A stretch of DNA of 63,093 bases, the filler included, from Trichosphaerium sp. ATCC 40318 (Eukaryota; Protista; Tubulinea), in NCBI GenBank assembly GCA_038496445.1. It is 3 parts of 3 records of this genome, joined end to end, with 100 filler letters (N's around TTAATTAATTAA, not from the genome) between each part and the next. Parts side by side here need not be neighbours in the genome. Positions count along the whole stretch, not along the records: positions 46,355 to 63,093 come from JALMLS010000615.1; 2 more parts are not named here. One strand, written 5' to 3'. The translations under genes were made by a program, and so were the position numbers. The stretch's first letter is position 1, and each line of letters starts with the position of its first letter. Below, in pieces: positions 46,355-63,000 of the stretch. Below the pieces are notes generated by a model, which worked only from the letters and a program-made list of their open reading frames with translations, did no database searches and had not been told where the DNA came from.

Positions 46355-46447
46355 TACAGCTATTTTCAGTCATGTAGTTCAATTTTTCTCGTAGATTGGT
46401 CAAATGTTTCTGTTTATTGTCTAGTTTACGTTTTTTAGTTGCTGCAC

Positions 46448-46537
46448 TGTTAAAGGGTCGGTTAGGGATAAAGATAACAAGTCGTCAAATTGTAAGTCCA
46501 CGTGATTTATTCTTTAATTAGTTTGACCGCTGTTACA
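46448..46537 (-). repeat. 3' LTR (90 bp)
   Basis: tgttaaagggtcgg...gaccgctgttaca, identical to 51678-51767. Confidence 0.95.
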
Positions 46538-46740
46538 TATCTCCCAGGGACCCCAGATAAGACGCCCTCGTCTTATAAATCATCTCCTTTGATCCAGGTA
46601 CGTTTATAGTCCGTATTTTTGTAATCAAAACCGTTAATAATTTTTATCACATCGTTTAGCCTTAATAACCATCCTCGATCCTGTTTTAGCGTCGGTACGT
46701 AATTAAATTACAAATCTTCGCTTTTCTTTAAACACATTTG

Positions 46741-49700
46741 TTACCAGTCGCTTATAGCCAGTAGTTGTTCTTCTTTGAATTCATTATCGAAGTTATCCAG
46801 CATTTCTCCAACCCATTCTTTCAACTGTAGAAGACCACATCCTGCCTGGTACGAAATCTCATTTTCTAAATCCTTACTCCTGGTGCCTGATCTAATAAAT
46901 CTTGATCCTATTCCCAATAAATCTTTTAGCGCCTCCTTTGATTTGTCCAATCCTAACTTCTCCATTACCTTGTAGGTACTTTGGATCAGTTCTTTTAGTC
47001 TTGACGTTCTCGTGGTTTTATTTCCTCTTTTACTTCTTCGCAGGTTTGTATTATTTTCTTCTTCTCCATCGATTTCCATTCTTTGTGGTTTGTTACTTTC
47101 TTCCCTTATCTTATTAGCTATTGTTCTAGCATCTCGCATAGACTTGGTTCCATCCATCACAGGTCCAGGTATATATTCTCCACTTCCATCTTCACTTGAT
47201 TCTAATTCTGAAAGTCCTCTTTCTGCCGTTTCTGTATAAATATTTCTTAGGTCCACATCAATATCTTCAGTAGGCCGTAGGTATGAATCAATGAAAGGTT
47301 TCATCCTCTCCACATGAACTACAGGGTTTAATTTGCTTCCTTTAGGTATGTCCAGCCGGTAGTTAACACTTCCAATCCTTTCTAATATCTCGTAAGGTAC
47401 TTTCCATTTCTGAGTCAATTTCTTCTTTTCTCCTTCTCTGACATAAGGTATGTATAACCAAACTTTTTGTCCCAGTTCATAATCTATCTCTCTTCTTTTT
47501 TCATTATAATATTTAGCTTGTTTCCTTTTCTGTGCCATTATATTCTTCTTAGCTAATTCATGTACAGCTCTTAGTCTATGTGCAATTGTTTCAGCCCAGT
47601 CTGCCATATTATATTTATTCTCTAAAATGTTTTCTTGTCCTACCAGTTCATCTAATGGTAACCTAGGTCTTGTTCTGAATAATAGCCTGTAGGGTTCATA
47701 CTTGGTAGTGGAATGAACAGCTGTACGGTATGTGAAAAGAGAAGGGTTGATCCATACATCCCAGTTATCCTGATCTTCATTTACAAAATGTCTAATCATT
47801 TCTATTAAGGTATGATTGAATCTCTCTGTCTGTCCATCGGTTTGAGCATGGTACGCTGATGTTTGTTGCTTGTCTATGTGTAGTAGATCATAGACTTGCT
47901 TCATAATTTCTCCAGTAAAGTTAGCTCCCTGATCTGTTAACACTTTCTTAGGAATTCCGTATCTGAAACACCATTGGTCCACAAATAGTTTGGCAATGGT
48001 CAAAGCCTCCTGATCCGGCATAGCAAAAGCTTCTACCCATTTAGTGAAGTTGTCATTTATCACTAAAAGGTAAGTGTTTCCTCTAGGTGTCCTGTTGAGT
48101 GGTCCAACGATATCCATAGTGACTAGTCCAAAAGGTACTCCAACATTAAAATTTTCTCCCATTAATCCTGCTTTTCTTAATCTCGGTGTTTTAGTTCTTT
48201 GGCATGATGGGCATGACTCACACCATTCCTTCGTTTCTGTAAACATTCCTGGCCAGTAAAATCTTTGTTTTATCCTGTGGTACGTTTTTTCGAATCCTGA
48301 GTGTCCTGCTAAAGGTGCATCATGTCCTTGCCTGAATATTTCTCTTTTCACATTTATATTATTAGGGACATATACTTGGTAACTTTCTTGTCCATCCGGT
48401 TGTACTGTACGTCTATATAATACTCCATCATCATTCAGTCGAAGTTCTCTTACTCTTGTATAGAATAAAGACTTTTTAAACTTATCTGAGTTCTTTATGA
48501 CCTGATTAATCTTTCCTGACGTTAAATATTCGATGTAAGTTGCTGTGGTTATATCTGCTTTTTGTTCCTTGTTCCAGTCCACATATCCTTGGTTCGTTCC
48601 TTTAATTTTGTAGTCTTCCTTTCCTATCTTAATCAAATTGACCTGTTTTGTAGCAAATGGTGTCCTTGATAGAGCATCAGGTACCACATGAAGCTTTCCT
48701 GGTTTGTATACTAGCTCAAAATCGAATTGTTGTATGGTGAGTATGATCCTCGCAATAACTGGTCTCACAGAGTTAATCTTTGTTAGGTATGTTAGCGGTT
48801 TATGATCTGTATATACCGTGAGTTTAAATTTTGAATAGGCCAGATAATTCTTAAAATATTCCAGTGCCAGTTTGATGCCCAGTAACTCTCTTTCGGTGGT
48901 ATGATAACTCCTTTGTGTTTCTGAAAAAGCTTTTGAGAAGTATGCAATTGGTTGTTCCTTTCCTGACTCATCCTTTTGACTTAGCACAGCTCCACAAGCA
49001 TAGTTAGATGCATCGACATGAAGTTCAAATCTTTCATTAAAGTTTGGATGCTTGAGGACTGGTGGAGTGGTAAATGCTGCCTTCAATGCCTTGTAAGCTT
49101 CTATTTGCGGTTGTTCCCATGTCCATTTAACTCCTTGTCTCCTTAGTTTCTGTAGAGGTTCTGTAATCCGAGCATAGTCCTGTATAAATCTTCTATAGTG
49201 GTTGGTAACATTTAAAAATCTTTCTAACTCTTCTAATCCGTTAGGCTCTCTCATATTCCTGATTTCTTCGATTGTAGATGTCTTAAGTAGTACTCCTTGT
49301 TCTGATATCCTGTGGCCCAAGAATTGTACGCTGGTATTAAATATATTTGATTTACTTGCCTTTAGTTTTAGTCCTTTTTCTTTTACCCTGTCCAATACTA
49401 ATTTTGTGTGTATGAGGTGTTCTGTAAAGCTCCTGGAGAATATAATAACATCATCGACATAACACATACACAGCTTCCAAAGAAGACCACTCATGGTAAG
49501 GTTCATCATCTTTTGAAAGGTGGCCATAGCATTTTTGAGTCCCATCGGCATTCTTACAAATTCAAAGTGTCCATCACTTGTTGAAAAAGCAGTTTTTTCT
49601 ATGTCCCTTTCTTCATTCTCCACTTGAAAGTAACTACTTGTAAGGTCATAGGTAGAGAAGAACTTAGAGTATGCAGTAGCATCCAGCATCTCATTGATCC

Positions 49701-51069
49701 GTGGTATAGGGTGAACAGCCTTCTTAGTAATCTTATTTAGTTCCCTGAAGTCCAGACAAAATCTCCATTTTCCATCTTTCTTTTGTACTAACACCACTTG
49801 CGAGGCCCAAGGAGAGTTAGATTCTCGGATGATCCCTTGTTCCAGCAGCTTTTCTACTTCCTGTCTTATGAGCTTAGCTTTCATAGGTGTCATATAACGG
49901 TAAGCCAAAGCTATAGGTCCTTTTCCTTCTTCAGTATTAATTGCATGTTTTAGTCCTGTAATAGTTGGTCCTGGTACGAGCTTCTCACTAAACTGGTCCT
50001 TGTATTCATGATGAAGAATAGCTACCATCATCTTCTGCTTGTCTGAAAGCTTCTTATCCGCTAACCTGAATAACCTGTAGATTTCCTTTATCTCTTCATC
50101 GGTCCTTTTCTTAGTAAACATTTTGTTAATTTCTTTTAGTGCTTCTTCCTTGTTGTCTTCCAGCGAATGTATAGTGTCCTCAGGGTCTTTAAGTTCAAAG
50201 GTACCTAGGTCATAACCTTTAGGTAATGTAATCCGTCTATTAGTCCCATTAAAAATCATAACTCTAACACTTCTCTTTATAGGTTTAACCAACTCATGAA
50301 TAACATAGACTCCTTCAGCAATAAGTTGTTTATGTCCATCGACATATCCTGATATTCCATTATAAGCATGAGGTACTATAGCATTAAACTCTGTTTGAGC
50401 ATAAGGCGATAGCTTTATGTCATTTGAAGTAAAAACATGAAGGTTGTCGCTCTTGTATCTTCTGTTAATTGTATGTATAGGTATAGGAAATCCTCCTTGA
50501 ACAATAATCTGTTTCTTCGACATACTGATATCACATTTACTTTTGTTCATATAATCCATTCCCAATAGTACATCAAACTTGAAGTCCTTGATAACTAACA
50601 TCCTTTGATAGATTGTGACACCGCCAACTTTAACAGGAAGAACAATAGTGCCATATACCTTGATGATCTTGTTGTCCGCTGTGTATAAAGGTCTGGTATA
50701 TTCTCTTTTAACTTCACTAATTTTCTTAAGATTTCTGACAACGTTTAGGTCCACCAAAGAAACAGAAGCACCAGTATCAAAGACAGTCTCCAGTTTGTTG
50801 TTTCCTATCACACAAGATGCCTTGAGTATACTGTAACTTATCTCAGGTTTGTTAGGCGCCTGGTCTTCATTAATAAAGTTAAATTCTTCACCACAAAAAG
50901 TAACAAAGTTTGAGTTTTTTCGATTATTTTTGTCTACTTGGTTAATGACAAGACATTCCCATGTGTTGGTGTCCGTAGGTCCTGAGCTATTGGTTAGTAA
51001 AGAAGAGGGCCTGTTTGGGTCCTGAGATGGGTCCTGTAGGTCCTGGCATTGGGTCCTGGTCTTACTCAA
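46741..51069 (-). CDS. pol: Gypsy pol polyprotein (protease, RT, RNase H, integrase)
   Basis: FDTGAS; WRFCLDFRELN, MPMGLKNA, YVDD; DAS...ERELL...TDH; HDAPLAGH...CPSC, MDIVGP, TDQG, ERFN. The frame stays open upstream to ~51447. Confidence 0.95.
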   Translation of the reverse strand: MSKTRTQCQDLQDPSQDPNRPSSLLTNSSGPTDTNTWECLVINQVDKNNRKNSNFVTFCGEEFNFINEDQAPNKPEISYSILKASCVIGNNKLETVFDTGASVSLVDLNVVRNLKKISEVKREYTRPLYTADNKIIKVYGTIVLPVKVGGVTIYQRMLVIKDFKFDVLLGMDYMNKSKCDISMSKKQIIVQGGFPIPIHTINRRYKSDNLHVFTSNDIKLSPYAQTEFNAIVPHAYNGISGYVDGHKQLIAEGVYVIHELVKPIKRSVRVMIFNGTNRRITLPKGYDLGTFELKDPEDTIHSLEDNKEEALKEINKMFTKKRTDEEIKEIYRLFRLADKKLSDKQKMMVAILHHEYKDQFSEKLVPGPTITGLKHAINTEEGKGPIALAYRYMTPMKAKLIRQEVEKLLEQGIIRESNSPWASQVVLVQKKDGKWRFCLDFRELNKITKKAVHPIPRINEMLDATAYSKFFSTYDLTSSYFQVENEERDIEKTAFSTSDGHFEFVRMPMGLKNAMATFQKMMNLTMSGLLWKLCMCYVDDVIIFSRSFTEHLIHTKLVLDRVKEKGLKLKASKSNIFNTSVQFLGHRISEQGVLLKTSTIEEIRNMREPNGLEELERFLNVTNHYRRFIQDYARITEPLQKLRRQGVKWTWEQPQIEAYKALKAAFTTPPVLKHPNFNERFELHVDASNYACGAVLSQKDESGKEQPIAYFSKAFSETQRSYHTTERELLGIKLALEYFKNYLAYSKFKLTVYTDHKPLTYLTKINSVRPVIARIILTIQQFDFELVYKPGKLHVVPDALSRTPFATKQVNLIKIGKEDYKIKGTNQGYVDWNKEQKADITTATYIEYLTSGKINQVIKNSDKFKKSLFYTRVRELRLNDDGVLYRRTVQPDGQESYQVYVPNNINVKREIFRQGHDAPLAGHSGFEKTYHRIKQRFYWPGMFTETKEWCESCPSCQRTKTPRLRKAGLMGENFNVGVPFGLVTMDIVGPLNRTPRGNTYLLVINDNFTKWVEAFAMPDQEALTIAKLFVDQWCFRYGIPKKVLTDQGANFTGEIMKQVYDLLHIDKQQTSAYHAQTDGQTERFNHTLIEMIRHFVNEDQDNWDVWINPSLFTYRTAVHSTTKYEPYRLLFRTRPRLPLDELVGQENILENKYNMADWAETIAHRLRAVHELAKKNIMAQKRKQAKYYNEKRREIDYELGQKVWLYIPYVREGEKKKLTQKWKVPYEILERIGSVNYRLDIPKGSKLNPVVHVERMKPFIDSYLRPTEDIDVDLRNIYTETAERGLSELESSEDGSGEYIPGPVMDGTKSMRDARTIANKIREESNKPQRMEIDGEEENNTNLRRSKRGNKTTRTSRLKELIQSTYKVMEKLGLDKSKEALKDLLGIGSRFIRSGTRSKDLENEISYQAGCGLLQLKEWVGEMLDNFDNEFKEEQLLAISDW

Positions 51070-51149
51070 AGGAACAGAGTAATTAAAAACAATTTTATTT
51101 AAGTCAATATCATTTTCATTGACTTGGTCCTGTTTTTGGTCCAGTACAT

Positions 51150-51551
51150 TTAACTCTGGCGGAGGGTAAGAGTTGTTGTTGGTAGGTTTTGGTCCTGGTT
51201 CCTGTTGTTCCTGTTGGTCCGGGTGATAGTTCCTTGGAGGTGGGTAGGTGGGAGTAGGTTGGTATCCTCTAGCTTTTGGTCTTGGATAATTTTTTCTTTG
51301 GGTAGGTTGCTTTGAAGAAAGATTGTATACGCTGTCTCGCTTAGTTGTGCGTCTACAGCTATCCTCTTGACTTCGTTTAGGAAATAAGGAAGGTCTTTGA
51401 GTGAGCCAGAAAATTTGAGTTGTTTCTTTGCGTATCCAATCTTCGCATCACCAATACTCTTCTTTCCTTTCCACTCGCCAATCCAATCACCGTTTTGTTG
51501 TTTCTTAAGGTAAGGGATATATTTGTGATAATCATGCTTTAATTCCGCCAT
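51150..51551 (-). CDS. gag: Truncated gag-like ORF
   Basis: KFSGSLKDLPYFLNEVKRIA...IFLQSNLP is typical of a retrotransposon capsid N-terminus. No zinc knuckle. The Pro/Gln-rich linker continues in the pol (-1) frame. Confidence 0.65.
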   Translation of the reverse strand: MAELKHDYHKYIPYLKKQQNGDWIGEWKGKKSIGDAKIGYAKKQLKFSGSLKDLPYFLNEVKRIAVDAQLSETAYTIFLQSNLPKEKIIQDQKLEDTNLLPPTHLQGTITRTNRNNRNQDQNLPTTTLTLRQS

Positions 51552-51660
51552 AGCGTCTGTTCTGCGTGTCTCCGTGTTTTTTCGTGTTTCTTCTCAGTTT
51601 TGAGAAAAATATTTTCGTTTTTGTAGTGTATAATTTCCTTTTTAGCGTGCCGGTTTAAAT

Positions 51661-51676
51661 CTCAGTCGTGTCGCCA
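51661..51676 (-). promoter_or_regulatory. tRNA primer-binding site
   Basis: Minus strand reads TGGCGACACGACTGAG 1 nt inside the 5' LTR, complementary to a tRNA ending ...GUCGCCA. Confidence 0.8.
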
Positions 51677-51677
51677 A

Positions 51678-51767
51678 TGTTAAAGGGTCGGTTAGGGATA
51701 AAGATAACAAGTCGTCAAATTGTAAGTCCACGTGATTTATTCTTTAATTAGTTTGACCGCTGTTACA
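51678..51767 (-). repeat. 5' LTR (90 bp)
   Basis: Identical to 46448-46537. Confidence 0.95.
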
Positions 51768-52546
51768 GCACGTGTTGAAGTACGGGTTGTACACGCCACC
51801 ACAGGTAGGTACTTGAAAATATAACCAAACAAGTTTCTGGTGGTTTTGCACGTGATTGTAATAAAATAGCTTCGTAACAATTCCTCTGATCAGTAAACCG
51901 TGTTATGCAGCCCTTACTGCCGTAAATGCGTTAGTCTTATTTCAAACTTGTTGCCACCTCCACTGCGAGTTGCTCATTGTACGATAGCGAATGCGTGACA
52001 TCTAAAAATCAGCAGGTGAAACCAGCATAGATAGAAAAACAAAAATAAAGAGAATAAAATCTCCGCCACTGGAATAAACAACAGCATGTTTTACAACCGA
52101 AAAGATACGACAGCACAACATTCTTGTATTTTGGCGTCCGGTTCTCGTTATTCTGTCTGGTTACAATAACGACATTATGATAATATCCTTTGTGCTTGCC
52201 TATCGGGGTAAAAAATAGCCCGAAAAAGAGTATTCGCCACTTACGAGCAACAAAGTTGAGCGAGGGTATTCGCACTATTTTGGTGAAATATTTGAAAAAC
52301 CTGTGTTTCGTGAAGGTACATGGCCTGTTTTGTCACCAGTTTGTAACTCCATTTACTTAAATAAACAGATTGAAGGTCTCCAAGTGGTTTGAAAAAACTA
52401 TTGTAGCGAATCAGTTAATAATAAAAAAAAAACCACAAAACCAGAACCGTAACACAAATTACAATAACACTTCACTGAAAAATCTCATGTGTCAAGAACA
52501 CCAACTTAATACTACTTTGCGATAACCTCAAGAGTGACAACACGTC

Positions 52547-55500
52547 ATGGCAGAATCACAGAGTGACAAATACCAACGTTTAGAAAAGGAAGAACCAACC
52601 AACATCCATCTCCCCATAATTGAAATTGTGTTTTCTTTTGCAGGTTTGTAGTGCTTGCTAAGCAAATAGTTGACAAAGTTTAGCAACAAATGGCTACAAT
52701 GAAGTTGTATCAACATTACTCAAAGCCAACGCCAATATTGATGTTGTTGATGAACATGGAAACACAGCTTTAATATATGCAGGTAACATGATATGATGAG
52801 ATACAACATGTACATATCTCACTCTACATTTAGCACAAAAAGGAAACAATAAGGTTGTATCAATGTTACTCAAAGCCAACGTCAATGTTGATGTTGTTGA
52901 TAACTTTGGAAACACAGCTGTAATATATGCAGGTAACATGATATGATGAGATACAACATGTACATATCTCATTATACTATTTAGCACGAGAAGGACACAA
53001 TGAAGTTGTATCAATGTTACTCAACGCCAATGCCAATGTTGATTTTGTTGATAAATATAATGGAAAAACATCTTTAATATATGCAGGTAACATGATATGA
53101 TGAGATACAACATGTACATATCTCACTCTACTATTTAGCACTAGAAGGACATGATGAAGTTGTATCAATGTTACTCGAAGCCAACGCCAATGTTGATGTT
53201 GTTGATAACTTTGGAAACACAGCTGTAATATATGCAGGTAACATGATATGATGAGATACAACATGTACATATCTCACTATACTATTTAGCACAAGAAGGA
53301 CACAATGAAGTTGTATCAATGTTACTCAATGCCAACGCCAATGTTGATGTTGTTGATGAATATGGAAAGACAGCTTTAATATGTGCAGGTAACATGATAT
53401 GATGAGATACAACATGTACATATCTCATTATACTATTTAGCACGAGAAGGACACAATGAAGTTGTATCAATGTTACTCAATGCCTTCGCCAATGCTGATG
53501 TTGTTGATAAATATGGAAAGACAGCTTTAATATATGCAGGTAACATGATATGATGAGATGCAACATGTACATACCTCATTCTACTATTTAGCACTAAAAG
53601 GACATGATGAAGTTGTATCAATGTTACTCAAAGCCAACGCCAATGTTGATGTTGTTGATAAATATGGAAAGACAGCTTTAATATGTGCAGGTAACATGAT
53701 ATGATGAGATACAACATACATATCTCATTCTACTATTTAGCACAAAAAGGAAACAATAAGGTTGTATCAATGTTACTCAAAGCCAACGCCAATATTGATG
53801 TTGTTGATGAACATGGAAACACAGCTTTAATATATGCAGGTAACATGATATGATGAGATACAACATGTACATATCTCACTCTACATTTAGCACTAAATGG
53901 GCATGATGAAGTTGTATCAATGTTACTCAAAGCCAACGCCAATGTTGATGCTGTTGATAAAAATGGAAAGACAGCTTTAATATATGCAGGTAACATGATA
54001 TGATGAGATACAACATGTACATATCTCACTCTACTATTTAGCACAAGAAGGACACAATGAATTTGTATCAATGTTACTCAAAGCCAACGCCAATGTTGAT
54101 GTTGTTGATAAATTTGGAAACACAGCTGCAATATGTGCAGGTAACATGATATGATGAGATACAACATGTACATATCTCATTCTACTATTTAGCACAATAT
54201 AGAAACAATAAAGTTGTATCAATGTTACTCAATGCCAACGCCAATGTTGATGTTGTTGATAAATATGGAAAGACAGCTTTAATATATGCAGGTAACATGA
54301 TATGATGAGATACAACATGTACATATCTCATTCTACTATTTAGCACAAGAAGGACACAATGAAGTTGTATCAACGTTAATTAATGCCAATGCCAATATTG
54401 ATGTTGTTGATGAATACGGAAATACAGCTTTAATATATGCAGGTAACATGATATGATGAGATACAACATGTACATATCTCATTCTACTATTTAGTACAAA
54501 GAGGATGCAATGAAGTTGTATCAATGTTACTCAATGCCTTCGCCAATGTTGATGCTGTTAATGAAGATGGAAATACAGCTTTAATATATGCAGGTAATAT
54601 GATATGATGAGATACAACGTGTTCATATCTCACTCTACTATTTAGCACTAAATGGACATGATGAAGTTGTATCAACATTACTCAAAGCCAACGCAACTAT
54701 TGATGCTGTTGATGAATATGGAAATACAGCTTTAATATATGCAGGTAACATGATATGATGAGATACAACATGTACATATCTCATTCTACTATTTAGCACT
54801 AAATGGACATGATGAAGTTGTATCAATGTTACTCAAAGCCAACGCCAATGTTAATGCTGTTGATAAAGATGGAAAGACAGCTTTAATATATGCAGGTAAC
54901 ATGATATGATGAGATACAACATGTACATATCTCATTCTACTATTTAGCACGAGAAGGACACAATGAAGTTGTATCAATGTTACTCAAAGCCAACACCAAT
55001 GTTGATGCTGTTGATAAATATGGAAAGACAGCTTTAATATATGCAGGTAACATGATATGATGAGATACAACATGTACATATCTCACTCTACTATTTAGCA
55101 CAAGAAGGACACAATGAAGTTGTATCAATGTTACTCAATGCCAACGCCAATGTTGATGTTGTTGATGAATATGGAAAGACAGCTTTAATATATGCAGGTA
55201 ACATGATATGATGAGATACAACATGTACATATCTCATTCTACTATTTAGTACTAGAAGGACATGATGAAGTTGTATCAATGTTACTCAAAGCCAACGCCA
55301 ATGTTGATGCTGTTGATGAATATGGAAATACAGCTTTAATATGTGCAGGTAACATGATATGATGAGATACAACATGTACATATCTCACTCTACTATTTAG
55401 CACAAAGAGGACACAATAAAGTTATATCAACATTACTCAACGCCAATGCCACTGTTGATGCTGTTGATGAATATGGAAATACAGCTTTAATATATGCAGG

Positions 55501-58119
55501 TAACATGATATGATGAGATACAACATGTACATATCTCACTCTACTATTTAGCACAAAGAGGACACAATAAAGTTATATCAACATTACTCAACGCCAATGC
55601 CACTGTTGATGTTGTTGATAAAGATGGAAATACAGCTTTGATTTATGCAGGTAATATCGCAAATGAGATAAAAACTATGTTTATTTACTATCATTTGAGA
55701 TTTTGACTATATGTCAATGTTAATGTTGAAATTAATCAAACCTAACGCAAGTAATATTGATACTATTGATGAAAGTGAACCCAACAAGAATTCAGGTATT
55801 GGGCACATTACAAAAAATTTGGTGAAATAATAGCTAACACTGTAAGTAGTAACTCCATGCCAAAGAAAGTGGCAAGACTTTATGTTCATTTTAATTAGAG
55901 AAGTGGTATCAAATACACCCTCAGCTGTTGAAAAATTCGTAACTTTCTTAAAATACTGTCCAAGTGGTAAACAATGCCATCCACTGTGGAGATACTGTAA
56001 AAAGCACTATTCACAAAATGTCAACGTAGAGGGGAGAAAACAGTTTGAAGAATGGCTTCACCGTTTGGTACACTTTGTTGAATACCAATACCTTAAACTA
56101 ACCATTACAACGTTTAGCCAACGCGGTATTATTTCAAACTGGCAATGGAAAAAGGGATTTGTTATTTAATTTGTTCTACATGTGATCCCAAAGTTGTACT
56201 GTCTCCGGTACGATATCTTCACTGCTACTAACGTCTACACTACAAACAACATTCTTCTTCTACAGGAATTCTGGAAACAAGATGGGCAATCAATGCAAGG
56301 CATTCTACATGATATGCCCAATGATGCTTGGGTTAATAACAGTCAAGATGAATCCTTAAAAGAAGAGTGTACTGAAGGCAAGAAGCGTGTGGTTATATAA
56401 TACTAAAAAAAGTTTTCAAAAGGATTAAAAGGTGAAAACGCATGGAGCCTGAATCCGCGATTGTATTTTGCAAATAATTGGGATAGCTCTAACACGTGCG
56501 TACAATTACTTTTTGTTAGTTCTAATATTACAAAAAGAGGCATTGTTGCAAAGGCGACACACTACAAAACACTGAATCTGCTTGATGCCAACGACAAAGT
56601 GGCAGTCAGAGAATTCAACATCCTCAAACAGGAGATGTCAAAACTACATGGCTATGACAATTACGATATCATTGAAGCGACTCTCGTTTATAATGACATC
56701 TTGACAGAAAACTTTGGTCGAATCAACGAAATACTGACGCACAGACATCAGTACGGTTGCCCCACACTTCATAGGTATTTTTGTGATTCTAAACATGCAT
56801 CTATTAGAGAACTGCCCAACTTGTTTAAAAAACAAAATTGGAAAACTGATAGTATCTACAAGGAATACAAAGAGACTGTGTACCAAAAGTACAACGCCCT
56901 CACTGCTTTTAATGATTGTTATACTGAAAAAAAAGATAAGGTAATGTTCTTGGTACTCTTGCACTACAAACATTTTATTTAGTTACCAGTGATATTGATG
57001 GTCCATGGAACAAAAGAAAAAGCAGCTAAGAGTATTGTAAAGGCTGGTTTTGGAACTGTGAGTTCTTTAGACGCTGGTTACTATGGTCAAGGGATATACT
57101 TCACTGTACGCTATTACCCAATTATTGCAGGTGGTCAATATTCATTTTCGGCATTAGAGAAGCATAAAGTATGCCACTTCATATGATTTAACACGAGGAA
57201 CTGCAAAAACACTGGTTTTAAGTCTTGTTACTCCTGGCAACGTTTACCCAGTACGCAAACAATAATATTGATGTGGATAATCTTTACTTACTTGATAAAA
57301 AGCATGATCCCCTTGTATGTAAAAAGACTGATGAGGGTACCAATACCATGAATGAAAGCTTGCACGGAAGACCAATAAAACCAGGCTACCAAAGTCACTA
57401 TGCATTGGTAGACCGCATCGGTAAACTTTTGCCCGCAGATAAACTTGAAGATGCAGTATACGATGAGCTGGTAGTGGCACAAGGTACACTCAGCAATACA
57501 ATCGAAAGATGTGATTAAAGTATCAAACACTATTTTAGATACTCAAGCTGTTGCTCGGTACATCATCAAAGTTACAAACAAACGTACAAAAAAACGTAAA
57601 ACTTCAAAAACCAAGAAAGGTAATAAAAAGACAAAGAAAGAGAAAGGCGATACTGAAGATCAAGCTTCAGAAGTAGATACTGATGGCTCAGCTGGCGAGC
57701 TATCTGATGATGAACTATCTGATTCTGAGGACACTTTTATTTCTAACCGGTATAATTTTATAGTATCTTTTAAACCTAAGTTTTGTACTAGAAAACTGTG
57801 GGCTGCCCATGATGATTCAACTGATGATGAACAACCAAGTTATAATTATGCCAATCTCAAACTAGAATTACAAGAAGCAAACAGCGAGGTAGAGAAACTG
57901 AAGAAGAGCCTGGCTGAACTTCATCGGAATTCACAGAAAATGAATGCAAACAAAGAACAGCACATTACTGAATTGACTGAAAGCAACAACACCCTAAAGC
58001 TAGACAATATCAACCTCTCCAAAGGTGTCCAAGATCTAATGCGAGACAACACTAGCCTAAAGGAGAAGAATGCCATTCTACTGGCAAAAATAGCTCTCCT
58101 TGAAAGTACAGCAAAGTAA
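52547..58119 (+). CDS. Ankyrin-repeat (20 exon-encoded units) + PARP-like ADP-ribosyltransferase + acidic/coiled-coil tail protein
   Basis: ATG 52547; 20 ANK exons 52684-55650. ART motifs LMVHGT (H at 57004), AGFG, GYYGQGIYFT, LSLVTPGNVYPV, GYQSHY, YDELVV (H-Y-E triad). C-terminal coiled coil; stop 58117-58119. Middle exons approximate. Confidence 0.85.
52684..55650 (+). repeat. Tandem array of ~151-bp units = 99-nt ankyrin exon + 50-52-nt intron (20 exons, 19 introns)
   Basis: Intron consensus gtaacatgatatgatgagatacaacatgtacatatctca(c/t)tctactatttag. Exon consensus AxxGHNEVVSMLLxANANVDVVDxxGxTALIYA. Confidence 0.95.
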
Positions 58120-58956
58120 TTCTGATTCTGTTGTAAACAAGCAACATTTATCAATAAACAACCACAGTTTAGTTTTTCTCACAAATTACTTTGTTTCAAA
58201 TTCATGGCAATAACTTGTTTTGGCGCACTGAAGATAAAGAATACTTATAAGTGCAACATTCAATTGTAATTTGTTCAACTTTGGAAGGTAAGATGTTGTA
58301 GATAAAATAACAAGATGCCAATTGTATGTATTGTTGAAATTTTATTGGTGCCGCTCAGGCCAATAAGAATTGGTAATTTATGACTTACTGCATAAATTTA
58401 AGCCCAATTTTTTTCCTCAATACACAGACGACATGTATATGTGCGTATAACGCTGCAATAAAACTATTTTCTCCTCTTGGTTTTTATTGAATGCGTTTTA
58501 AAAAAAAAGTGCTGAGCTGACTTTCACTGATGCCTTACACTGACCCAACATGTTGGTACATATGTAACGGGGGTAAAAAAAGTGTCTTCCTTGACACTAA
58601 CACAAGATAAGCTATGTGAGCAAATCAAGATATATTCGCTTCTAACAGATCAATTAATCTGTAAGTCAAAGTTGTTTTCTCCTCTTATTAACTTTGTTTC
58701 TACTTAGTTGTACAATGCATTACTGTCTTTTTTATTTGTATGGGACAATCGTGTATGAGTGCCAGTACAAGTCATAACAATCCTCACCTAAGAAGTACCA
58801 CAATACAAAATGTACAAGGTTATTGTTCTACTTGTAAAGCATCTTAAAGCCCGCTCACGGTTTTAGTTTTAGGATCCTACATGTACCAAGGCGACTCCAA
58901 CTTACTCCACAAGCTAAAGTAGTTTTTTAGTGCTCGAAAAACGCACGTGCGTTTGT

Positions 58957-59404: not shown

Positions 59405-60006
59405 ATAATGTGTTTTTCTGAAATCAAAAAATCTACAATATACAATTTCCTACTTTTTAACACATGTTAGTTCCTCACCACTTGTACTTGGCTCAAAGAA
59501 TTGTGAACAACTGGATTAAAACAGAAAAAAATTACTTTCGGTACAAGTACTTTACTGGATAACACAAAATAAGTAGGTGGCGCGAATTAGCGAGCACGCT
59601 TATATCAAAAAACCTGTATATTCCTTGTACACTATCGTGTTATTCACCTACTAATTTCGGTTTTGGCTAGCCAACCAATGGCAGATATAGTACATTCTTT
59701 TTGGTTCTCTTTTTCTTATTTATGTACTGCATGTACTTTTAAATACAGAGGCTACAAATTCTGTTTTCGATAAAATAAAAAAAGTTGAAGTATGCCATTC
59801 GAAGTGGATGCTTGGATGTAAAATAAACAAACTACAAAGTAGCTGTGGTTGTTTGTTTGGTTTTGATTAAGCAAAGATTGCTTTAAAGTGTATCATGTAG
59901 GAGCATGTATACAACAAATTGAGCTTCAAGAAAAACATACATTTATTTTTTAAGGTGGTAGAAAAAGTTCCAACGTGTTTTCATAAAGAACAACATCATC
60001 ATTTGT

Positions 60007-63000
60007 TTAGAGCTCATAAAGCAGAGACATTGCCTCAGCTGCTTTACTACGAACAAGTGGACTCTTTTCTTTAAGTAACTTGATGAGCGCTAAAGAAAAT
60101 GTCAGCTCTCATAGCACGTGCACAAGCAAGAAAAATTGAAGAGAAAAAAAAGTTAAAAAAAATACCTCGACAAACAATTCCTGGATTAAGATTAAGCTTC
60201 TCTCTAAGCTCCTCTGATAGATTTCCGAGTAAGAAACCAACAAGTACAGCACCATTAGATCTGATAATCTCCCATTGACTACTAAAGTACTTCTCAACAG
60301 TCCTCATGACATATTTGTTTACATTCTTAGGGAACTTCGCAATCTACAAAAGAAAAAAATAAGTTTGCAGAACAACATTCAAACAACAAACTTATCACGT
60401 GATTTTATCAGAAAATTAGTTCAAACAAGAACTTGTAAACATGGTAGATAATATAGGCACATATGGATAATGACCACCAAACGTGGAGATCCACAATTCA
60501 GAAGGTATTTTTTGTTTTGCTTTCAAAAAAATCTCAAGCCGTACCAATGCAATAGATAGTTTGTTAATGTATTCATCATAATCCAAGTCATACTGTGGGT
60601 TGAGTTTAACCATAAGTTTAGTAACTTCTTCATCACGGAAGAGAGGTCCGATTTTATTAAAAGTCCTACGTGAAAATGAGCAACTTTGACATTTACTTTT
60701 TCTTTTTGGCTTGTATGTACCTCTTTACTTCCTTTGTCACTTCAGGATCCTTGTCCTTCAAATGAACAAGCAAACAAGGTAAGTTGATGTGTAATTGATC
60801 AAAGTAAGTATCTTTAGAAGCACCATCAACACCTTTAAAAAAGAAAGTTAGACCAAAAAGAATTATGAAAACAAGAGCTCTTCAAGGCCATACCAAATCG
60901 ACTCAGAGCGCCAAAAAGATTTATAGCAGCACCACGTATTCTGGCATCAGGTTTATCAAGAGCAGGTTGTATCCTGTTGCAAATATTGATCAAAATTGGA
61001 GCAATCCTGCCTTCATCAACCATTTCGAATACCTAATGTAAAAACCACGTTAAAAAAACACGTGTTTATGTCGCGTGCTAAAAAATATCTTTCAAAAGAA
61101 TAAAATAACATACCTTTGATAGTCCACGCATAGATTCCATAGCAAGCACTGGATCTGGAACATCTATGGAAGACAACAAAGCATCCAAAACTGATTGTGC
61201 ATATTGATTTACTTTCTCAACACCACATGACACAATGTTGGATAATCCACGTAAAGCTTGTATTTTCAAGTTTGTATCAGTCAAAACATTAAGTAGCTCA
61301 TTAACAAGCTTGTCAAGAAGCTCTGGGTCTTTCTGGAAAATAAAGTAAGTAAAAGCAAGAAAAAAATGAGAAATAAAAGAAGGGTTTCCGAACACTTGGA
61401 CGAGTTGTTCTGCTCATAAAATATTTTGAACGTACAGCTGTAGCATTAATAAGTTCTCCATATACTGCAGCTGTAACTTTTCTTTGTCCAATGTAATTGG
61501 CTTGCAAGTAAGGCTTCAAGAATGTGAATATTTTTCGCTTTTCATTCGGATGTTCAGCACAAATACAACTACAAATGACGATCAGTAAGTGCTCAAACTC
61601 CAACTTAATGTTTCAAAAAGCCGTACGCTATAATCTTCTCTACACCTTGTAGGTAGTTCTCTCCTTTAAGAGTATCCCAAACATTCTCAGCGTCCATCAT
61701 AACACTCATATTTTCTTCTTTTGCAGCCTTGATAAACTTACCAAGAGCTTCAACAGTTTGACTGAAAAAAAGAGTTAATACCAGCGAGTACAAAACTACA
61801 AATGAATAAGTACTTACTTTACAGGTTCTGAAAATCCATAAGATGATCCTAATCGAAGAAGTAGAGATGAAACCAATAGAGGATAATTATTTTGAACAAT
61901 AAAAACCATCTCATCAATTTCCATAATCTCACCAAGAGCACAAGTTGCCTAAACAAAAAATATAAGGATTCGTAACTACACGTAATACATAGGCTCAAAA
62001 ACAGGTCATCGAAAGCCTCTCAACACGATCGACAACCAAAAAAAAAACTCAAAAACCGTTTTTTCTGGCACCAGAGTAAAAAAAAGAGACGTACGCTACA
62101 GCTCATGTCTGAAGGGCATTCAACCGACTTTCCTCCTTTCTCTTTTTCTTCCATAAGCTCACCATTGTTAATAGTATTCGTAAGGAACTTAACAAAAGGC
62201 ATAACAAGCTTAGCATCCTTTGCAATAGTATGTAAAGCGCGGACAACATGTTCATCATGTGGAATTGGTTCTTTAAGAACAGTCTCTATAACAAGCAATG
62301 TATGATGTTGAGCAAGTGATCTAATAGCATGTAGAGAACCGTTTATGACTTGATCATTTTGAACAAGTCTCATCTGTGCAATGACACCCTAACAACAGAA
62401 TAAGTTAAAAAAGAGAAACTGTTGTCAAACGAAGGCATAAGCTCGATAAATTACCTTAACTACATCTGGTACACTACGCTCAGCTTCTTCACCTCTAGAT
62501 TGAACTAAACCAAATAGAACAACACAAGTACCACGTGCTGAAGTAACCTATATAACCCGTCAACCAATCAGTAAACAAGAGCAAGAAAAAAGAAAAAAGA
62601 ATAAAAAAGAAAAGTATCAATCTTACCTCTGGATCTGTAAGACCCTTCAACGTATGTACTAGAAGTTCATCCAAGTTTTCATCTGGCAAAGCATTCGATA
62701 CAATAGTTGCCATCTCACGTACAACCTTGAACTGTTCATTCAAATCACCAGCACCAACACGCTTCCTAAAATAGGGTTACTATCACTTAAACACGATTAG
62801 AATCTTTACTTTAAGTCTGTTAAAGGTTGCAGTGCTTTTGGTGGGCTGACATCACTGATTGATTTATCATCCTTTCCTGCGATACCACGCATAGCGAAGT
62901 CCAAGTCTTGTAGAGTTAAAACAATAATAAATAACAACAGCAAGAGACAACAAAGAAAAAAGAAATCTTTCTAGCTGGACGGGAAGGATACACAGTACGA

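Follow-up and report, generated by a model that had tools for sequence, protein, structure and literature searches.

The N-terminal ankyrin domain of tankyrase (PARP5a/b) brings substrates to the H-Y-E PARP domain at the C-terminus, and an oligomerisation element adjoins the catalytic domain. Tankyrase contains five conserved ankyrin repeat clusters (ARCs) plus a SAM domain, is highly conserved, and occurs only in animals and choanoflagellates (PMC9688111). In fungi, the ANK, TPR and WD repeats of NLR (STAND) proteins, including Podospora nwd/het-e/het-d, show high internal conservation (Dyrka et al. 2014, PMC4986451; PMC12222747); the class is defined by a repeat identity of 85% or more across 100 amino acids (aa) or more (PMC4986451). 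In Ectocarpus, ROCO-LRR and NB-ARC-TPR genes with one repeat per exon are candidate immune receptors (Zambounis et al. 2012, PMC3341825; PMC11378527). This study concerns an array of 20 ankyrin-repeat exons at 52684-55650 (plus strand), and the gene that contains it, in a 63,093-nucleotide (nt) stretch of DNA from Trichosphaerium sp. ATCC 40318 (assembly GCA_038496445.1); the whole stretch is called the window below.

The array forms the core of one complete plus-strand gene (52527 to about 58170) with 32 exons, 3996 nt, 1331 aa and no stop other than the terminal one. The encoded protein consists of an N-terminal cap, the 20 ankyrin exons, a C-terminal cap, a linker of about 290 aa, an H-Y-E catalytic domain of PARP type and, after a charged stretch, a coiled coil. 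There are 22 ankyrin repeats in total, and they form one uninterrupted solenoid. An initial annotation of this DNA described the array and missed its fusion partner, the PARP-type ADP-ribosyltransferase with its coiled coil. We read the array as the ligand-binding solenoid of a lineage-restricted ANK-PARP protein, shaped by concerted evolution together with selection for diversity, and assign this reading a probability of about 0.6.

Structure and variation of the ankyrin array

Tandem Repeats Finder returned a single array at 52696-55654, with a period of 151 bp, 19.6 copies, 91% matches, no indels and a score of 4687. Each 151-bp unit is made of a 99-nt ankyrin exon and a phase-1 GT..AG intron of 50-52 nt, repeated 20 times in tandem. 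The exons are delimited by recurring GCAG/GTAA donors and TTTAG/ acceptors; by this parsing the first four lie at 52684-52782, 52834-52932, 52985-53086 and 53139-53237, and the last at 55552-55650. The third is 102 nt long and the other 19 are 99 nt. All 19 internal introns are 50-52 nt, GT..AG and phase 1; none of the 20 exons has an in-frame stop, and joined exons read as continuous ankyrin repeats. The initial annotation had arrived at the same count of 20 stop-free exons, one with 102 nt and the others with 99 nt, and at phase-1 introns, and its comparison with Ectocarpus (PMC3341825) is apt. Every array exon is phase 1-1, and the exon-per-repeat structure of Ectocarpus, one repeat per symmetric exon of constant length, is found here as well. 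RNA-derived contigs from four public runs were placed on 52400-58300; these are k-mer contigs of non-identical transcripts, and the array exon-exon junctions, with the intron removed, are present among their loose ends. Translations of single exons (32 aa) matched Pfam Ank, Ank_2, Ank_4 and Ank_5 with E-values of 2e-4 to 5e-3, which places them among the ankyrin repeats, the single-exon scores for Ank and Ank_4 lying within about 1 bit of the Pfam cutoff. The ankyrin array of a related transcript, L001, gave Pfam E-values of 1e-34 to 1e-38.

Exons and introns of the array differ sharply in how far they vary; the statistics that follow rest on one genomic copy of the array. Mean pairwise nucleotide identity was 87.7% among exons versus 97.4% among introns, and 47 of 99 exon columns are variable versus 7 of 52 intron columns (Fisher p 3e-5). 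A 28-nt core of the array intron occurs 18 times in the window, with 0 occurrences expected from shuffled sequence; it had no exact match in metagenome contigs of the Joint Genome Institute (JGI). Each unit contains a near-invariant block of about 70 nt, which comprises the last 19 nt of the exon and the entire intron; past this block, diversity jumps to 0.22 over the 20 nt that open the following exon. RNA structure was rejected as the cause of intron conservation, a 9-bp hairpin in the array intron being no better than in shuffled sequence (z -0.38). Rfam gave no match anywhere in 52400-55900 at E up to 1, and no intron-hosted snoRNA or similar RNA of a described family was detected by Rfam in this region, despite a UGAUGA C-box-like motif.

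Within the exon, residues 2, 3, 24 and 25 are the most variable (entropy 1.65, 2.02, 1.37 and 1.84, respectively), and position 27 is a two-state N/K site. We take exon positions 2, 3, 24, 25 and 27 to be positions 13, 14, 2, 3 and 5 of the designed ankyrin repeat proteins (DARPins), in the library numbering that reportedly goes back to Binz et al. in 2003 and has positions 2, 3, 5, 13, 14 and 33. Five of these six library positions (2, 3, 5, 13 and 14) are the most variable in the array, and the sixth, position 33, is an invariant V. The initial annotation had located the variation at binding positions, which holds for these five and needs correction for position 33. The nearly invariant scaffold that it described was not recovered: at another eight or nine positions the repeats switch among two or three residues (H/N, N/D, E/K, M/T, K/N, V/A, Y/C and V/I), and mean amino-acid identity between the repeats is 73.5% (range 59-97%). 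Three surface codons each show four to five amino acids, reachable by single steps.

Nucleotide diversity (pi) is 0.026 in the introns and 0.023 at four-fold sites (14 sites, 2 of them variable), versus 0.133 for nonsynonymous differences per nonsynonymous site (pN). Such synonymous variation as there is falls in two-fold N, K and H codons at or beside variable residues. Over the whole exon, the ratio of nonsynonymous to synonymous differences (pN/pS) by the Nei-Gojobori (NG86) method comes to 1.33; it is 2.2 at the five surface codons and 1.0 at the remaining ones. Relative to intron pi, pN is 5.2-fold overall (bootstrap range 2.3-20, with 1e-4 of the resamples not exceeding 1), 3.7-fold at scaffold codons and about 12-fold at surface codons. 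A test for selection on the exons, as had been proposed in the initial annotation, thus favours selection for diversity, both in the surface pN/pS and in the excess of pN over the neutral level.

The array exons have a mosaic structure. Their opening 30 nt and their closing 40 nt both recur unchanged in other, different exons, so that identical modules of 30-40 nt are common to different exons. For example, exon 2 has the left part of exon 8 and the right part of exon 4, and the right part of exon 8 is that of exon 1. Of 210 informative site pairs, 86 failed the four-gamete test, and the minimum number of breakpoints or recurrent changes (Rm) is at least 9 within 99 nt; combinations across the intron are likewise reassorted. 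Judged from these mosaic exons and four-gamete failures, recombination or conversion among the units has been frequent, with a grain finer than the exon. The "exon cassette" that had been proposed as the shuffled unit is the wrong grain, since left and right exon parts assort independently. Amino-acid identity within arrays is 73.5% in the window and 63% in L001, and between the two arrays it is 52%; greater likeness within than between arrays would be the expectation of concerted evolution or of independent expansion. The L001 repeats are mutually more diverged (identity of 63% at the amino-acid and 75% at the nucleotide level) than the window repeats. At DARPin positions 13/14, other residues, namely W-N, W-E and I-K, occur in RNA contigs of related runs.

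Explanations of the array

In the favoured explanation, unequal crossing-over and gene conversion between 151-bp units would keep the introns and four-fold sites about 97% identical, and would also reassort a limited set of sub-exon modules. Selection would keep or create amino-acid differences, mainly at the beta-turn and helix-1 residues that line the groove. The groove may recruit variable protein ligands, which the C-terminal H-Y-E PARP domain would ADP-ribosylate, unless it modifies itself, and the coiled coil may oligomerise the enzyme. Diversification would be germline, between paralogs, alleles or strains, and not somatic. An immune or allorecognition sensor role, as given in the initial annotation, is a matter of pure conjecture.

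Several points weigh against this explanation. The whole-exon pN/pS is not significantly greater than 1 (18% of bootstraps at or below 1). The strong signal depends on the introns and the 14 four-fold sites being taken as neutral, and the intron itself could be under constraint. Since there is one genomic copy only, "diversifying" is inseparable from old repeat-specific residues that are kept amid neutral homogenisation. The RNA contigs are 88-99% alike, which suggests that many of them come from paralogs or other strains. Lastly, ligand binding, catalysis, and a role in parasite conflict or in self/non-self discrimination are steps that we infer.

The main rival takes up the third of these points. 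The array would be stable and differentiated, each repeat making its own contacts with a fixed partner, and conversion would homogenise only the unprotected introns, four-fold sites and scaffold; no arms race or receptor diversification would be involved. The same pattern of homogeneous neutral sites and different selected sites would be expected, ordinary proteins commonly contain long ANK arrays with 22-24 similar units (PMC7314423), and many of the variable sites are two-state at intermediate frequency. However, the modules are re-used at several array positions and reassorted, unlike repeat-specific identities; the three surface codons each take four to five amino acids by single steps; and at these positions the transcripts of related runs have yet further residues. 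A stable array is therefore considered unlikely, although it is the rival that fares best. Each of the three explanations considered next is less likely than both this rival and the favoured one.

The frame and uniformity of the units would also suit a programmed combinatorial "library", in which exon skipping, alternative splicing or DNA rearrangement gives many isoforms per individual or clone. Array exons of equal length and phase 1-1 mean that any exon subset stays in frame, splice sites and introns are near-identical, and recombination or splice choice would find an ideal substrate in the invariant stretch of about 70 nt at each intron. Some RNA contigs even link distant exons, such as 52780 to 55097; yet these joints are uninformative, coming from k-mer contigs of non-identical transcripts, which cannot place repeats, and exon skipping was rejected as their interpretation. 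No inverted or selector sequences were found, and the hairpin and Rfam results given above likewise count against a library. Moreover, the mosaic breakpoints fall inside exons and thus point to DNA recombination over evolutionary time rather than to splicing. We regard such a library as improbable.

The same low odds are given to an assembly or polishing artefact, whereby the array is real and its copy number, order or variant mosaic has been distorted by collapse or mis-polishing. Units of 151 bp at 88-97% identity are hard to assemble, and a match of at least 99% is reached by only 7 of the 71 run X1 contigs. Against this, all 20 exons are distinct, with frame, splice sites and ankyrin scaffold intact and no frameshifts in 3 kb; polishing errors would not spare introns and four-fold sites yet strike binding-surface codons; and exon-exon junctions of this kind are seen independently in RNA.

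Least probable of all is a neutral recent expansion, in which a young tandem duplication with relaxed surface constraint carries tiny introns that need their exact sequence: although constraint is weakest at the surface of any ankyrin repeat, whose positions are for this reason the ones varied in DARPin libraries (PMC5777970), and although the confidence range of the overall pN/pS includes 1, relaxation cannot raise the rate of amino-acid change 4-12-fold over neutral, the gene's remaining 12 introns are spliced although their sequences are unrelated, and the four-fold sites are as invariant as the introns, so that to call intron divergence low is not special pleading.

A bolder form of the favoured explanation, concerted evolution with selection for diversity, is doubtful and is put forward as speculation. 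The protein might represent an undescribed class of intracellular sensor, in which a hypervariable ankyrin solenoid is joined to a PARP effector and its surface is rebuilt continually by recombination of 151-bp units. The intron-centred block of about 70 nt would serve as the homology track, module order would differ among strains or even clones, and the whole would be an ADP-ribosylating counterpart of NLR-type non-self recognition.

Arrays that are homogeneous at neutral sites yet diversifying at ligand contacts mark recognition proteins under conflict, the known cases being fungal NLRs and brown-algal ROCO/NB-ARC genes. The same signature appears here in a setting that is new: every unit of the ankyrin array contains an intron, and the array is joined to an ADP-ribosyltransferase. 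The array introns provide a built-in neutral yardstick that is rarely available. PARP enzymes become candidate effector arms of variable recognition systems outside animals, which agrees with vertebrate PARPs being known to evolve rapidly in conflicts between host and virus (PMC4038475). Should module order prove to vary among strains, the locus would be a tractable model of how binding diversity arises from recombination of a short exon-intron unit.

The PARP-type domain, the gene model and neighbouring elements

The PARP-type ADP-ribosyltransferase (ART) is encoded by four plus-strand exons (56983-57105, 57158-57250, 57303-57483 and 57539-57749) placed by Pfam, the fold of a homolog and RNA splice joints. 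Single window exons matched Pfam PF00644 at E 3.7e-4 to 4.5e-4, below the cutoff, because each exon is only a fragment of 41-65 aa. The cutoff of 26.7 bits was passed by two full-length homologs, P0001 (30.9 bits) and P0002 (36.5 bits), and P0001 shares 53% identity with the window protein across 628 aa; the domain thus belongs to the PARP/ARTD profile by way of its fragments and these above-cutoff homologs. The ART fold was found in an AlphaFold2 model of the homolog (P0001:1-420), and not in one of the window protein; the predicted local distance difference test score (pLDDT) was 54 overall and 70-84 over most of the PARP part. In a Foldseek search of the PDB with this model, all top matches were PARP ART domains (PARP3, 4, 15, 1, 10 and tankyrase), with E-values of about 1e-7 and target-normalised template modelling (TM) scores of up to 0.69. 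The H-Y-E motifs are present in the window protein as H-G-T, G-Y-Y-G-Q-G-I-Y-F and Y-D-E-L-V-V. Among seven relatives, G-T, Y and E-L-V are invariant, and H is replaced by Q in three. These three are the more distant P0005, P0007 and P0008, which keep the Y and E motifs; P0005 has two PARP-like domains. From its sequence, the C-terminal domain is classed as a PARP-type ADP-ribosyltransferase, and catalytic activity is predicted.

Relatives of this protein are few. The 109-aa linker exon, searched exhaustively against 1.8 billion representative proteins, yielded P0001 and P0002 as its two real relatives. Both derive from transcript contigs of one eukaryotic sample at JGI, and as the only close relatives they make the protist host given in the initial annotation plausible. 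A word-index search with the same exon gave no match. The C-terminal domain is represented by only two 50%-identity clusters among these 1.8 billion proteins, a wider search found relatives in only 7 of 5.8 billion proteins, and the window PARP domain belongs to a small, divergent clade. A PDB sequence search with the PARP domain, tankyrase included, gave no match at E 0.01. The related-locus search with the C-terminal alignment found none, exact look-ups showed two open reading frames (ORFs) of the window not to be on record, and an ANK query from L001 returned generic ankyrins only, at no more than 50% identity. L001, the transcript that carries P0001, contains six or more ankyrin repeats ahead of the same C-terminus, and P0009, a more distant relative, also combines ANK and PARP. 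The ANK-PARP architecture therefore appears to be conserved in a small clade, as far as the sequences of L001 and P0009 tell. In L001 (1-784), a run of N separates the ankyrin part from the PARP part, and for this reason the two were called as separate genes.

The RNA contigs support 12 of the 31 introns of the gene (array junctions counted as one class) as well as the transcript start and end. Transcription starts at about 52527-52534, where contigs begin with adapter or template-switch loose ends, and contigs terminate at about 58156-58175. Exon 1 (52527-52643), delimited by RNA contigs and the open frame, encodes the N-terminal ankyrin cap, with the ATG at 52547 and 32 codons plus one base. 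Intron 1 (52644-52683; 40 nt, GT..AG, phase 1) lies outside the repeated intron family, and its joint 52643/52684 is seen in runs X1 and X5. Intron 21 (55651-55699; 49 nt, GT..AG, phase 1), placed from sequence and gene model, follows the last array exon and lies outside the homogeneous intron set. It is not claimed to be a decayed copy of the array intron, its global identity of 78% comparing with 58-87% for unrelated introns of the same gene. The C-terminal cap exon (55700-55795; 96 nt, phase 1-1), identified by direct reading, holds a degenerate ankyrin repeat and keeps the frame in the full model.

Five exons (55847-56067, 56118-56207, 56266-56377, 56423-56750 and 56808-56940) encode the linker of about 290 aa and are placed from RNA, frame and homologs; they are colinear with P0001 and P0002, and contig edges or joints lie at 55845, 56207/56267 and 56750/56808. 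No Pfam family matched the linker exons. An assignment of the linker to PLD/NgoFVII was discarded; the Atlas look-alikes, at 0.91, are weak and share few features. At about 56490-56530, the window protein has 13 residues (about TCVQLLFVSSNIT) more than P0001 and P0002, and run X1 contigs also seem about 40 nt shorter there; this could be an insertion or a paralog difference. RNA joints or edges mark the introns at 55796-55846, 56208-56265, 56751-56807, 56941-56982, 57106-57157, 57251-57302, 57484-57538 and 57750-57791. The introns at 56068-56117 and 56378-56422 were placed from frame and colinearity with the homologs; the latter is apparently GC..AG (AAG/GCAAGA ... AAAAG/), and the remaining 30 introns of the gene are GT..AG and 40-58 nt long. 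Past the PARP domain, exon 57539-57749 continues into a lysine-rich and then an acidic stretch. The last coding exon (57792-58119; stop TAA at 58117-58119), supported by RNA contigs and by weak coiled-coil-type Pfam matches, encodes the coiled-coil tail.

On the minus strand upstream, an apparently intact Ty3/gypsy retrotransposon occupies 46445-51767. It has a gag-like ORF (51150-51551), a pol ORF of 1442 aa (46741-51069) with protease, reverse transcriptase, RNase H, integrase and an SH3-like domain, and, on its two flanks, direct repeats of 93 nt (46445-46537 and 51675-51767) with 99% identity. The element has the look of a recent insertion and ends about 760 bp upstream of the ANK-PARP transcription start. 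Downstream, a multi-exon HEAT-repeat gene (60000-62800, minus strand) is convergent with the ANK-PARP gene; its Atlas look-alikes are HEAT-repeat families.

Comparison with known systems

Many repeats of vertebrate ANK1/ANK2/ANK3 are encoded by 99-nt exons. These proteins resemble the window protein in having a long solenoid (24 repeats) whose inner groove binds many partners, and differ in their old, diverged repeats, their long, unrelated introns, and the absence of concerted evolution and of a PARP domain. Arrays of 22-24 ankyrin repeats are a preferred size, with about one superhelical turn at 22 (PMC7314423). DARPin repeats are divided into 27 framework and 6 binding residues (PMC5777970); the window array likewise varies most at five of the six library positions and largely keeps the framework. 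Unlike these libraries, it is natural, has position 33 fixed, has several two-state framework positions, and uses few residues per site.

Tankyrase shares with the window protein an N-terminal ankyrin region, a C-terminal H-Y-E PARP domain and an adjoining oligomerisation element, and its ART domain is among the structural matches of the homolog. The window protein instead has one uninterrupted 22-repeat solenoid, a 290-aa linker and a C-terminal coiled coil, and Pfam gave no SAM match in the linker exons or in P0001/P0002. Identity with tankyrase was rejected on the lack of SAM, of ARC organisation and of a PDB sequence match.

The Ectocarpus genes, proposed as candidate immune receptors in a eukaryote that is neither animal nor plant, have in common with the present gene one repeat per symmetric exon of equal length, exons that can be gained or lost in frame, and evidence of positive selection at ligand-facing residues. 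They differ in carrying LRR or TPR instead of ANK, and ROC-COR or NB-ARC instead of a PARP effector. In the window the near-identical introns measure about 52 nt and belong to a single 151-bp tandem DNA repeat, sub-exon modules are shuffled, and a single locus is seen, in contrast to the Ectocarpus type of multigene family with exon gain, loss or exchange between loci and a signalling NTPase or kinase domain; RNA contigs 88-98% alike suggest paralogs or other strains.

We know of no per-repeat introns in fungal NLR arrays, whereas each repeat unit here carries its own. The partner domain also differs, as Pfam gave no NACHT or NB-ARC match in the linker exons or in P0001 and P0002, on which ground NLR identity was rejected; the place of these domains is taken by a PARP-type ADP-ribosyltransferase. 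The window repeats, at 73.5% amino-acid identity (87.7% at the nucleotide level), fall under the 85% class threshold, and the host does not seem to be a fungus. On the other hand, both systems have long arrays of very similar repeats (up to 21 ANK in fungi) with concerted evolution and reshuffling. The hypervariable positions lie in both at the ANK inner helix and the beta-hairpin/loop, and these are positively selected in fungal arrays (PMC4986451). Repeat shuffling together with an excess of amino-acid change at the surface, as in the NLR type, is found here in one gene copy, and the role proposed for the fungal proteins is non-self recognition. Among the known systems, fungal NLR repeats are closest to this array in behaviour, the exon-per-repeat genes of Ectocarpus closest in gene structure, and tankyrase closest in domain logic.

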